DNA of 63,601 nucleotides, the filler included, from Octopus bimaculoides (lineage: Eukaryota), in the NCBI RefSeq assembly GCF_001194135.2. It is 6 parts of 6 records of this genome, joined end to end, with 100 filler letters (N's around TTAATTAATTAA, not from the genome) between each part and the next. Parts side by side here need not be neighbours in the genome. Positions count along the whole stretch, not along the records: positions 35,837 to 43,991 come from NC_068998.1; 5 more parts are not named here. One strand, given 5' to 3'. A model generated the notes under the pieces. That model saw only the letters and a list, made by a program, of their open reading frames with translations. It searched no databases and was not told where the DNA came from. Below are positions 40,840-43,713 of the stretch, in pieces. The position numbers were made by a program, and so were the translations under genes. Every line of letters begins with the position of its first letter. Within the stretch, counting starts at the first letter, position 1.

Positions 40840-40934
40840 TTAATTGGACATGTTGAGAAGTTTAGCTACAAATAAATGCACAAGAACATTCTGAAGATTG
40901 TTCGAGATTATTTGAACATTCTGAGTTTGCATTC
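40840..40934 (-). CDS. Exon 4, terminal coding part
   Basis: aattttgcAG|gaatg; MQTQNVQIISNNLQNVLVHLFVAKLLNMSN then TAA. Confidence 0.52.
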
Positions 40935-43442
40935 CTGCAAAATTGTTATATTCGTTGATAATGGTAATTCTCGATTTAAATCACTTCAGTACTTAGTATT
41001 TACCTTGTTAATCCATAAATATATCATTTCGGAATACATACTTGCAATAAATCCTTACATCTAAATACACTAAAACAGATTCTGTATACATCATCGCCCA
41101 TTTAAATATTGCTTGTGGAATGAATAGGAAAAAATCTCGTTAGGGCTATCCGAATTTATATAAAAATAACATTTAGAATTTAGTTCACTGATTCACGATT
41201 TAAAAAATATGAAGAAATAAGAAGTATCTTACTAGTACAAATATCAAAAGCCAAGTATTCGTACACAAGCCCCTTATAACACCATTGTGGGCCTTTTCTT
41301 CTGGCACATTCTTTATACATTCGTAATCGTCTGGAGGACAAACATACATTGTACTTTGTAAATATGCTGAACATAAATGGTTATATTTTTTCTACTTTTG
41401 TGTTAAGAAGAAATTATAAGGAAGTTAATAAAATATGTAACATTTCAAAATGTATGATATTATTTATTTTATTTTTTTAATGCTAATCTTTAGATGGTTT
41501 TATTTGTTTTTCTTGACGAATGTCTCATCAATTATTCGAGTGTTTTAATTCGTCTAAGAAATATTAGTCTTTCACTCTTAAGGATCCAACTGTTTAAGAA
41601 ATAAATTAATATCTTCATTATTTTCAACAAGATGTATTACAATAATAACATTGAAAATAAAACAATATCTACCGACAGAAACGTTGATTGTCATTATCAA
41701 ACTTCAATCGGGGATACTTTATCCAGGCCTCTGGACAATATTCTTCACTCAGACAATACTTCATTCCAGTAAGCTCTGCAAGTTTAAAATGTACGTTTAA
41801 TATTTATACAAGGTAGAATTTATTTTGCAAAATACACTATAAATTAAAATACACTATAAATTAAAACCTGTAATCGTGTTTTAAAATCGCAACATCTTTC
41901 GGAAACTCTCAAATATGATTGTTTGTTGCCAGAGAATTTACTTTCCCACACTTTATGATTTTGTGTGTGTATAGGACGTTTTCTGCGAAAATTGTTTCTG
42001 TTAAGACAAATACACCAACCAGCTTAACAAAAGGTTGTATGGTTGGTATAAATCTCCACCAGGCAATCATAAGATGACATACGAAGTCGAAGTCTATCAC
42101 CAGACGATTGTTTGTATTTCAAAGTTAATGTGGCATGTTTTCATTGGGTGATATACAAGAAATGACAGAAATAATATATATATAGTATTCGATAAACAAC
42201 AACACACTTTCAAACAGGTAGTGAAGATCGTTATTATTTACTTACTCTTTGAGTTTACGCCCCAGAGTGTCTGCAGCCCAACGACTGAAAGAGAACAATG
42301 GAAGAAATGAATGAAAAAATGAATGACCTTAATAACGTATCTTGCTGGCACTCCATTGGTGACGACGGCGAGGTTTCTAGTTGATCTGAACAGTGGTTGA
42401 GCACTCTACAGAAATGCGTATCCATAACGGAGTTCTCAAGGTGGTTCAACATGAAACTCAATGTGAGTAGGTTGGCTCTTTGAATAACAAGTACCACTCA
42501 TTTATGCCAGATGAGTGGATTGGAGTACGTGAAATAGTGTGTTGTTCAAGGATATAACGCACCGGCAAGAATCGAAATCACTACCTTTTGATCAGGAACT
42601 GAGTACCGTAACAACTAAGCCAAGCGCCTTCGCATCGTACACTAACACTACAACAACAAAATATAAGATAGAGAAGAAACGAAAACAACTTAAACGGCAG
42701 CAATATTTCTATTGTGAGCAACACTATCAACAACAACAACGACAATGACAACATTAGCAGCAGCAGCAGCAGCAATAACAACAATACATTCACAGCCGTT
42801 GCTGCGGATGCCTCAGCGCTATTTAGAATGGACATACTGCAGAAAGACATACGTCTAGCCCAAGCAGTGAAATTGATAAGTCTGGAAAAAGCGCGAGCGG
42901 GCATTGATATTTCACTCGATTTGTTCGACTAAAGGCGCGGTGCTCCAGCGTGGCCCCTGTCAAATGACTAAATCACGTAAAAGAAATACAAGAAAATACG
43001 TTTATCATCTAATTATAATTAGGATTTATGGACATGCAAAAGTAATTCTTTCTTGTAGTAGTGGAAGACCGAAGTTGACATAAGTGTTGAAACCGAGTCA
43101 TTCCTAAATAAAATTCGTGCTCCGATACATAAGAAACTGTGTAGAATAATTTCGCTGATATTGCGTAATGTCGTCCCGCTTCTAAGAACTTGGTGAATGT
43201 TTCTGAAACAAAACTAGATTAAATCAGAAACTTTTAGAGCCAGACGGAATTCTGGAATATTTTTGTTTCTAAATCTATGGTTATATAAGTTTGGAATATT
43301 TGTGCTTATCTACACACACACGGAGACGCATACACAAACACACACATACACACACTCAAGGTGAGTGAGAAACTACTGCGATCTTTTTCTGAGTAACTCA
43401 TGTTCGTACAGTTATATATCTACACAAAATGAAGAAAGACCA

Positions 43443-43485
<43 letters not shown>

Positions 43486-43488
43486 GAA

Positions 43489-43570
<82 letters not shown>

Positions 43571-43713
43571 AGAAAGATAGAAAGAAAAAAGAAAGAGAGA
43601 ACGTGTGTGTGTGTTAGATTAACTGGTATCCTCTGAATATTATGAAGATGAAGAGCGTTTACGTTTAAGTACTTACCAACAATGACAAGACAAATATGTA
43701 GAAAAAAATTCAT
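40840..43713 (-). CDS. Predicted 4-exon gene (43713-43677, 41775-41673, 41366-41233, 40934-40840): 122-aa secreted Cys-rich protein with hydrophobic C-tail
   Basis: CCACCATG start, GT-AG introns (1901, 306, 298 nt), phases 1/2/1 chain without a stop: MNFFLHICLVIVELTGMKYCLSEEYCPEAWIKYPRLKFDNDNQRFCRIFTKYNVCLSSRRLRMYKECARRKGPQWCYKGLVYEYLAFDICTRMQTQNVQIISNNLQNVLVHLFVAKLLNMSN*. No Ns in the span. No expression or homology evidence available. Confidence 0.62.
41233..41366 (-). CDS. Exon 3 (134 nt, phase 2 to 1)
   Basis: ttatgttcAG|cata...tgtacta|GTaaga; within ORF 41180..41374. Confidence 0.62.
41673..41775 (-). CDS. Exon 2 (103 nt, phase 1 to 2)
   Basis: aaacttgcAG|agctt...ttctgtcg|GTagat; open frame LTGMKYCLSEEYCPEAWIKYPRLKFDNDNQRFC. 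Confidence 0.62.
43022..43260 (+). mobile_element. Tc1-associated remnant in intron 1, homologous to 37752-37811
   Basis: ggatttatggacatgcaaaagtaattctttcttgtagtagtggaagacc..ttgacata vs ggatttgtgcaaatgcaaaaataa..tagtagtggaagatc..ttgacata. Confidence 0.6.
43677..43713 (-). CDS. Exon 1 (MNFFLHICLVIV + g)
   Basis: Strong Kozak context, donor GTAAGT at 43676. Confidence 0.68.

Follow-up and report, generated by a model that had tools for sequence, protein, structure and literature searches.

The window analysed here is a stretch of 63,601 nucleotides (filler included) from Octopus bimaculoides, and its part from position 35837 to 43991 corresponds with 100% identity to chromosome CM046618.1 of the O. 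bimaculoides assembly GCA_001194135.2. On the minus strand of this part, positions 43713-40752 of the window hold a real gene with five exons, LOC128249871, which is already annotated in RefSeq. The best overall explanation of our observations is that this gene probably encodes a soluble, secreted mini-protein with six cysteines, which belongs to a small and fast-diverging family of O. bimaculoides. An initial annotation, made from the sequence of the window alone, had proposed a hidden four-exon gene for a small, secreted, cysteine-rich and possibly glycosylphosphatidylinositol (GPI)-anchored protein at this place. The gene is not hidden, since RefSeq lists its product as "uncharacterized protein" XP_052830374.1 (P0001), which has 101 aa encoded by five exons, with a coding range equal to window 43713-40752. 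Our data support its general idea that a gene with short exons encodes a small, cysteine-rich and secreted protein here.

We could reproduce XP_052830374.1 residue for residue by joining five GT-AG exons of the window sequence, all of them on the minus strand. The coding part of exon 1 (43713-43677) starts with the CCACC-ATG that the initial annotation had placed at 43713, encodes MNFFLHICLVIV plus one base of the next codon and ends at the donor G/GTAAGT in phase 1. This exon is also kept in LOC128249908, where it reads MKYFLCICLLIV, and in three local duplicate copies. Exon 2 comprises only 39 nt (42284-42246) between the acceptor tctttcag and a GTAAGT donor. It encodes VVGLQTLWGVNSK, completes the signal peptide and is required to rebuild XP_052830374.1; its residues are present in the isoform X2 of LOC128249908 (P0002) as VVGLQTCWSFNSLK, and an exon-2-like copy is also found at window position 36473. 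Exon 3 (41775-41673, 103 nt) encodes (K)LTGMKYCLSEEYCPEAWIKYPRLKFDNDNQRFC with cysteines 1-3, and exon 4 (41330-41233, 98 nt) follows the acceptor tcctccag/ACGATT and encodes RRLRMYKECARRKGPQWCYKGLVYEYLAFDICT with cysteines 4-6. The coding part of exon 5 (40780-40752) adds NEDRQRHRG and a TGA stop codon behind the acceptor ccacaaag/ACGAGG, and an ATTAAA is located approximately 80 nt downstream of it. The splicing of exon 5 is suggested by the RefSeq model, and LOC128249908 likewise ends, after the exon with the last cysteine, in a hydrophilic, basic tail of nine residues (MSKEKPKSR). The whole region 40752-43713 is unique and gap-free, just as the initial annotation had described it, and assembly gaps (runs of N) are located at 37813-38356 and 40021-40250.

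The 101-aa precursor would start with a signal peptide of approximately 24-25 residues, divided between exons 1 and 2. The N-terminus FFLHICLVIVVVGLQTLW reaches a Kyte-Doolittle mean of up to 3.5 over nine residues, and with exon 2 included (MNFFLHICLVIVVVGLQTLWGVNS) it takes the form of a conventional signal peptide, in which the hydrophobic core is long. According to the (-3,-1) rule, cleavage is likely to occur after V-N-S, just ahead of KK. The resulting mature protein would consist of approximately 76 aa, would be basic (17 K+R vs 10 D+E) and is predicted to be mostly helical, and its six invariant cysteines might form three disulfides. Its C-terminus, NEDRQRHRG, ends 10 residues past the sixth cysteine and carries no GPI-type signal, so that without a membrane anchor a soluble secreted mini-protein would be expected. 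An AlphaFold2 (AF2) model, computed for the mature domain in an alignment with P0002, has a predicted local distance difference test score (pLDDT) of 82 and a predicted template modelling score (pTM) of 0.68, with helices at residues 3-8, 15-20, 30-47, 50-59 and 61-75 of the mature domain. The full precursor, modelled without an alignment, gave a pLDDT of 58, which is too low for use. In the isoform X1 of LOC128249908 the sequence RKRR stands right before the mature domain, where LOC128249871 has KK, and this hints at a processing by convertases.

An exhaustive HMMER (phmmer) search of 1.84 billion representative proteins identified a single true relative of the protein, namely P0002, which is encoded on the same chromosome and shares 57% identity with it (E = 6.6e-28). 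Relatives outside of O. bimaculoides were not found among these 1.84 billion proteins, which is in agreement with the lineage-specific character suggested by the initial annotation. Three further phmmer matches with E-values around 1e-4 were long repetitive proteins that aligned in many stretches, and we judged them to be due to chance. Word-indexed searches, with the 122-aa product of the initial annotation and with a profile of three family sequences, returned only the two RefSeq proteins from O. bimaculoides, and a literature search on cysteine-rich secreted proteins of this species did not reveal anything specific. RefSeq lists two isoforms of LOC128249908; where exons 2 and 3 join, X1 (P0006) differs from X2 by the seven residues LNRKRRE.

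A third copy, which is not annotated and which we refer to as copy B, was detected by tblastn on the 23-kb locus around the gene (L001). It is located directly downstream of LOC128249871 on the same strand and beyond the window part; its homolog of exon 3 occupies L001 21924-22026 and its homolog of exon 4 L001 22803-22900, and its last exon lies past the end of L001. Both exons are intact, keep all six cysteines and share approximately 36% amino-acid identity with LOC128249871. The former has an equal length of 103 nt and retains the cysteines together with the W, YP and FC residues, and the latter is also 98 nt long, with matching positions of the acceptor (ttttccag/GCGATT) and the donor. 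Over LOC128249871, LOC128249908 and copy B there are 20 invariant columns including the six cysteines, and the core residues kept besides these are W43, Y46-P47, F58-C59, R61-L62, M64, G73 and E84. We define the family by a signal peptide of the form M-x-[FY]-F-L-x-I-C-L-x-I-V-V-V-G-L-Q-T and by the cysteine framework C-x5-C-P-[ED]-A-W-x2-Y-P-x11-F-C-x-R-L-x-M-x3-C-x8-C-x13-C. LOC128249871 and LOC128249908 possess both elements, as seen from their alignments and the E-value of their match. The family, so far seen solely in O. bimaculoides, would comprise LOC128249871, LOC128249908, copy B and some partial downstream duplicates.

Apart from the cysteine scaffold and these core residues, the mature domain evolves faster than the flanking introns and the signal peptide. 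We compared LOC128249871 (copy A, L001 11739-12543) to copy B (L001 21772-22962). The ungapped identity amounts to 57% for exon 3 and 56% for exon 4. With one and the same aligner, exons 3 and 4 together are identical at 120 of 200 positions (60%), and the collinear blocks of the flanking introns at 358 of 459 (78%, with a range of 71-88%). The difference between exons and introns is significant (Fisher p = 4e-6). These figures stem from a strict-scoring aligner, which replaced a more permissive segment-wise version with a shuffled baseline of 0.63-0.68. The proportions of nonsynonymous (pN) and synonymous (pS) differences between both copies are 0.42 and 0.45, respectively, and the corresponding rate ratio (dN/dS) is 0.90. 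LOC128249871 shares about 69% identity with LOC128249908 in the signal peptide and 49% in the mature domain. Exons that evolve faster than their introns, in combination with a conserved signal peptide and cysteine framework, classically mark diversifying secreted peptides, among them those of venoms, pheromones, immunity and reproduction. The exons that outpace the introns, together with the conserved signal peptide and cysteine framework, thus point to a rapidly diversifying secreted mini-protein.

Some aspects weigh against this interpretation. The comparison of rates covers 66 codons of a single gene pair. Copy B may be a pseudogene, since its copies of exon 1 and exon 2 are partly broken, and this would weaken the selection argument; however, a decay of copy B alone would lead to equal rates in exons and introns and not to faster exons. 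Since only the alignable intron blocks were compared, the intron identity is inflated, although the introns still reach approximately 72% when the unalignable 119 nt are counted as random. The pS of 0.45 also exceeds the intron divergence of approximately 0.22, and we do not have an explanation for it. Furthermore, the AF2 model was built on two sequences and its five versions range in pLDDT from 47 to 82, the splice pattern is deduced from the RefSeq model and the comparison of paralogs, and the pairing of the cysteines to three disulfides is one that we infer.

The gene model of the initial annotation has to be compared with the five-exon structure in more detail. All of its elements can indeed be found in the sequence. 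There is a GT-AG pair at each proposed junction, the exons have lengths of 37, 103, 134 and 95 nt and phases of 1, 2 and 1 (boundaries on the minus strand at 41775/41673, 41366/41233 and 40934, with a TAA ending at 40840), and the stop-free coding sequence of 369 nt yields a 122-aa product with seven cysteines past the N-terminus and the tail ...NVLVHLFVAKLLNMSN. For an estimate of chance, we searched 40 dinucleotide-preserving shuffles starting with ATG exhaustively for stop-free chains that begin at this ATG and contain at most three GT-AG introns. Chains of at least 369 nt occurred in 52% of the shuffles, and the real region even permits one of 1038 nt. A stop-free GT-AG chain alone is no better than chance expectation and therefore the case for a gene must draw on other evidence. 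Such evidence comes from P0002 and copy B: the presence of exon 2, the absence of an insert, the basic tail and the splice positions favour the RefSeq structure with five exons, 101 aa and six cysteines over four exons, 122 aa and seven cysteines. The first two exons of the initial model, corresponding to exons 1 and 3 of LOC128249871, are correct, as are the last 98 nt of its third exon. In contrast, its fourth exon is unsupported, and exon 2 at 42284-42246 was overlooked because skipping these 39 nt keeps the frame.

The two deviating segments of this model differ in what they would contribute. The third exon is extended at its 5' end by 36 nt (41366-41331, minus strand), which add 12 residues including IFTKYNVCLSS with the seventh cysteine. 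Judged from the paralogs, this segment is most likely the noncoding end of intron 3: it is missing from P0001 and from P0002, which runs uninterrupted through FCGRLSMY, and the matching stretch in copy B is 47 nt long, out of frame and interrupted by a TAA in both possible frames. Its inclusion also disrupts the motif FCxxLRxY, and the match to the Pfam family RGM_N discussed below drops from E = 0.014 to E = 0.13. The proposed last exon (40934-40840, minus strand) is located inside the annotated intron 4 and encodes RMQTQNVQIISNNLQNVLVHLFVAKLLNMSN followed by a stop codon. A tail of this kind was not present among the relatives found by the exhaustive HMMER and the word-indexed searches, P0002 included, and LOC128249908 lacks an equivalent of the tail exon. 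Within this tail the longest run without D, E, K, R, H, N or Q has 4 aa and its end is the polar NMSN, so the sequence is unlike a GPI signal.

The reading in which the initial model is correct, with four exons, 122 aa, seven cysteines and a hydrophobic C-terminal signal exchanged for a GPI anchor to give a neuritin- or RGM-type surface protein, appears very improbable in the light of these results. Its stop-free chain with canonical GT-AG sites is matched by equally long chains in every second shuffle or so, skipping exon 2 places a Glu behind a short hydrophobic core, and an odd number of seven cysteines leaves one of them unpaired. RGMs and neuritin are GPI-anchored, which would fit an anchored product, but neither the hydrophobicity of the tail nor any relative sharing it speaks for such an anchor. 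With neuritin/CPG15 (PF15056) the octopus protein shares its small size, six cysteines and a stretch of the form YP...C-x8-C, the likeness mentioned by the initial annotation; beyond this, similarity is nil. There was no match to Pfam NRN1 at E ≤ 10 with any version of the protein, and a pairwise BLASTP against human mature neuritin resulted in E = 4. On the other hand, the proposed last exon has an acceptor (ttttgcag) that seems no weaker than the annotated one (ccacaaag), and a hybrid protein with this tail scores marginally higher against RGM_N than P0001 (E = 0.0038 vs 0.014). An alternative isoform with the last exon 40934-40840 is a candidate, and this exon could be used in a minor isoform. 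A match to a transposable element, which the initial annotation had named as an argument against a gene, was not observed: the collinear tandem paralog is the sole match of the exons in the 23 kb, and there are no Pfam domains of transposable elements. The comparison illustrates that a stop-free GT-AG chain found by eye can locate a real gene and yet get 40% of the exon structure wrong.

One could also assume that there is no functional protein gene at all, either because the model is a prediction artefact or because it represents a young or decaying duplicate whose frame is open by chance. The restriction of homologs to one species, a dN/dS near 1, the broken partial copies that crowd the neighbourhood and the ease with which stop-free spliced chains are found in this region would all be compatible with this assumption. 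However, three copies with 36-57% identity keep their reading frames, exon lengths, splice positions, the six cysteines and approximately 14 other residues, and a conservation of frames, splice positions and cysteines in three copies argues against neutral decay. The exons also diverge faster than the introns and not equally fast. Moreover, two RefSeq isoforms exist for LOC128249908, which usually would be a sign of transcript evidence. Overall, we consider the absence of a functional protein unlikely and prefer the secreted six-Cys mini-protein.

The possible relation to the RGM proteins' N-terminal domain, also mentioned by the initial annotation, requires a more careful consideration. PF06535 (RGM_N) was the only Pfam family matched, with 12.9 bits (E = 0.13) for the initial gene model, and 16.1 bits (E = 0.014) for P0001. 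The mature domain scored 17.1 bits (E = 0.0068) and the hybrid protein 17.9 bits (E = 0.0038), and the gathering score of 24.2 bits was never reached. P0002, P0006 and copy B did not match any Pfam family on their own. A phmmer search of the PDB with P0001 returned chains of the RGMB N-domain only (E about 0.6-0.9), and the PDB matches of P0002 and copy B were unrelated proteins at the same level (E = 0.4-0.6). The three-sequence family profile had no match in the PDB. A Foldseek search of the PDB with the AF2 model did not list any RGM structure, its best E-value being 5.4 and nothing being significant. Pairwise BLASTP against the RGMB N-domain resulted in 26.6 bits and E = 6e-6 in a single comparison. 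When the three octopus copies were compared by hhalign to the RGM N-domains of three vertebrate sequences, P was 7.7e-4 and the probability only 25%. The RGM profile was built from these three vertebrate sequences; a word-indexed search with the RGMB N-domain had yielded two vertebrate fragments only. When compared to shuffles with fixed cysteines, copy A scored better against this profile than 5000 of 5000, and copies C and B better than all but 35 and 43 of 5000, respectively. The suggestion of the initial annotation thus holds insofar as RGM_N is the sole family returned by any search, although the scores always remained below the threshold.

In terms of structure, the octopus protein and the RGM N-domain (PF06535; structures 4UHZ, 4UI0 and 6Z3H of RGMB with BMP2 or GDF5) are alike in their size of approximately 70 residues and in the order of six cysteines. 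The cysteine spacings are 5-19-8-8-13 in the octopus protein and 4-22-8-7-21 in RGMB, with a near-identical central part C-x8-C-x7/8-C, and the motif FCxxLRxYxxC...C-x3-LVY is common to both. In the AF2 model, which was built from two sequences only, the long predicted helices at 30-47 and 50-75 lie where helices 2 and 3 of RGM are located. Differences are found in helix 1, which is shorter in the octopus protein and interrupted by a Pro, and in the missing RGM_C (partial vWD) domain, GDPH autocleavage site and GPI signal; according to Pfam and the sequence, neither RGM_C nor GDPH is present in the protein. In addition, a single octopus copy out of three matches alone, Foldseek did not find a match, and the octopus family, in contrast to RGMs, is species-restricted and fast-evolving. 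Taking this together, homology to RGM_N is conceivable and we would still rather bet against it; helices 2 and 3 may be derived from the three-helix, three-disulfide N-terminal domain of RGM.

In RGM N-domains three helices form a bundle with three disulfides, and this bundle occupies the site of BMP2 and GDF5 for the type 1 receptor; the domains suffice for the binding of BMP and GDF5, soluble fragments can inhibit signalling, and in RGMB the exchanges Leu103Glu and His106Arg abolish and Gly101Arg attenuates the binding of BMP2 and GDF5 (PMC7354924). Alignments place K79, L81 and E84 of P0001 at the positions of RGMB G101, L103 and H106, so that only the Leu is retained. At the G101 position LOC128249871 and LOC128249908 have a Lys and copy B has an Ile. 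All three copies share E84, and YKG stands in the octopus protein in place of the RGD/RGN loop of RGMs. Because only the Leu of these three contact residues survives, an RGM-style binding of BMP is unlikely. This bears directly on the idea that the protein is a stand-alone RGM N-domain, which, in the manner of soluble RGM N-domains, would capture BMP/GDF ligands as a soluble decoy by way of their type 1 receptor site and so tune BMP signalling. Such a decoy would agree with the return of RGM_N as the sole family by Pfam and PDB sequence searches, the shared FCxxLRxYxxC...CxxxLVY motif, the BLASTP and hhalign results, the at least 99% of the Cys-fixed shuffles beaten by all three copies, the same order of six cysteines, the coincidence of predicted helices with RGM helices 2 and 3 and the retention of the pivotal Leu. 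It would further agree with the sufficiency of RGM N-domains for ligand binding and the inhibition by soluble fragments (PMC7354924). Nevertheless, every database-wide score is below its threshold, the G101 and H106 positions and the loop have diverged as described, and a restriction to one species and a faster-than-intron evolution are unexpected for a protein that modulates a developmental pathway which is itself conserved. We therefore regard a decoy function as improbable. Only slightly less doubtful is the broader scenario, that the BMP-binding N-domain of an RGM-type gene was excised and gave rise to free, secreted and diversifying mini-proteins, which would serve as soluble modulators of TGF-beta-family ligands or as a new scaffold for toxins or pheromones.

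The neighbourhood of LOC128249871 is a tandem array in flux. Duplicated pieces span window 36073-38484 (L001 15043-17653), between LOC128249871 and exon 3 of copy B, and all of them are on the minus strand. Three are copies of the exon-1/promoter region: one at 38484-38444 has lost the donor, one at about 37031 has its ATG changed to ACG, and one at 36106-36073 has an intact ATG and a GTAAGT donor in phase 1. A fourth piece, from 36473 to about 36444, is similar to exon 2. The assembly gap at 37813-38356 has a duplicate of exon 1 on either side and could conceal further copies. In intron 3 of copy B there is an insertion of approximately 390 nt (L001 22262-22650), which is richer in GC and not present in intron 3 of LOC128249871. 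It looks like an insertion of the short interspersed element type; ARAGORN and Rfam did not reveal a tRNA in the 23-kb locus, this insertion included.

Some other sequence features of the locus should be mentioned. In intron 1 of LOC128249871 there are long microsatellites of the types (AT)n and (AG)n as well as a run of GCT/GTT trinucleotides (window 43445-43600 and 42730-42800), and this run produces a spurious leucine-rich open reading frame of 107 aa at 42581-42904. In intron 2 an exact tandem duplication of 17 nt is located at window 41829-41866. A repeat of approximately 168 bp with 86% identity is present both downstream of the gene (window 39777-39936) and approximately 8 kb upstream (L001 2325-2492), and probably is a dispersed repeat. 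Matches to Rfam miRNA families at L001 17774-17870, 21071-21205 and 3933-4024 were rejected, since they are far under the gathering scores and several families overlap at each spot. At least those at 17774-17870 coincide with TA/TG simple repeats, and the sub-threshold miRNA matches are probably low-complexity artefacts.

With regard to its function, the product of LOC128249871 might be an extracellular binding protein with a surface under diversifying pressure, acting on a target outside of the cell. Components of saliva or venom, chemical signals and immune or reproductive effectors are candidate roles. Conotoxin superfamilies, snake-venom PLA2, three-finger toxins and molluscan protein pheromones, all of them fast-evolving secreted families with a cysteine framework, offer a number of parallels. 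As in these, the signal peptide and the cysteine framework of the octopus family are conserved and its mature region is divergent, its exons diverge more than its introns, tandem duplication is accompanied by decayed copies, and a dibasic site precedes the mature domain in the isoform X1 of LOC128249908. In contrast, there was no match to any of these families in Pfam or in the protein searches, the mature domain of the octopus protein is larger (approximately 76 aa) and helical, and the octopus family consists of three known copies, with a selection signal from one pair.

Since the gene is already present in RefSeq, the new aspect is a tandemly duplicated family that has so far been seen only in O. 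bimaculoides, and in which a predicted helical six-Cys scaffold stays constant while the exons of the mature peptide outpace the introns. If the link to the RGM N-domain were true, a module of a developmental co-receptor would have been reused as a free secreted protein. The family would represent a tractable lineage-specific secreted scaffold in cephalopods if its expression turned out to be tissue-specific, with the salivary gland, skin, sucker or reproductive tract as possible sites.

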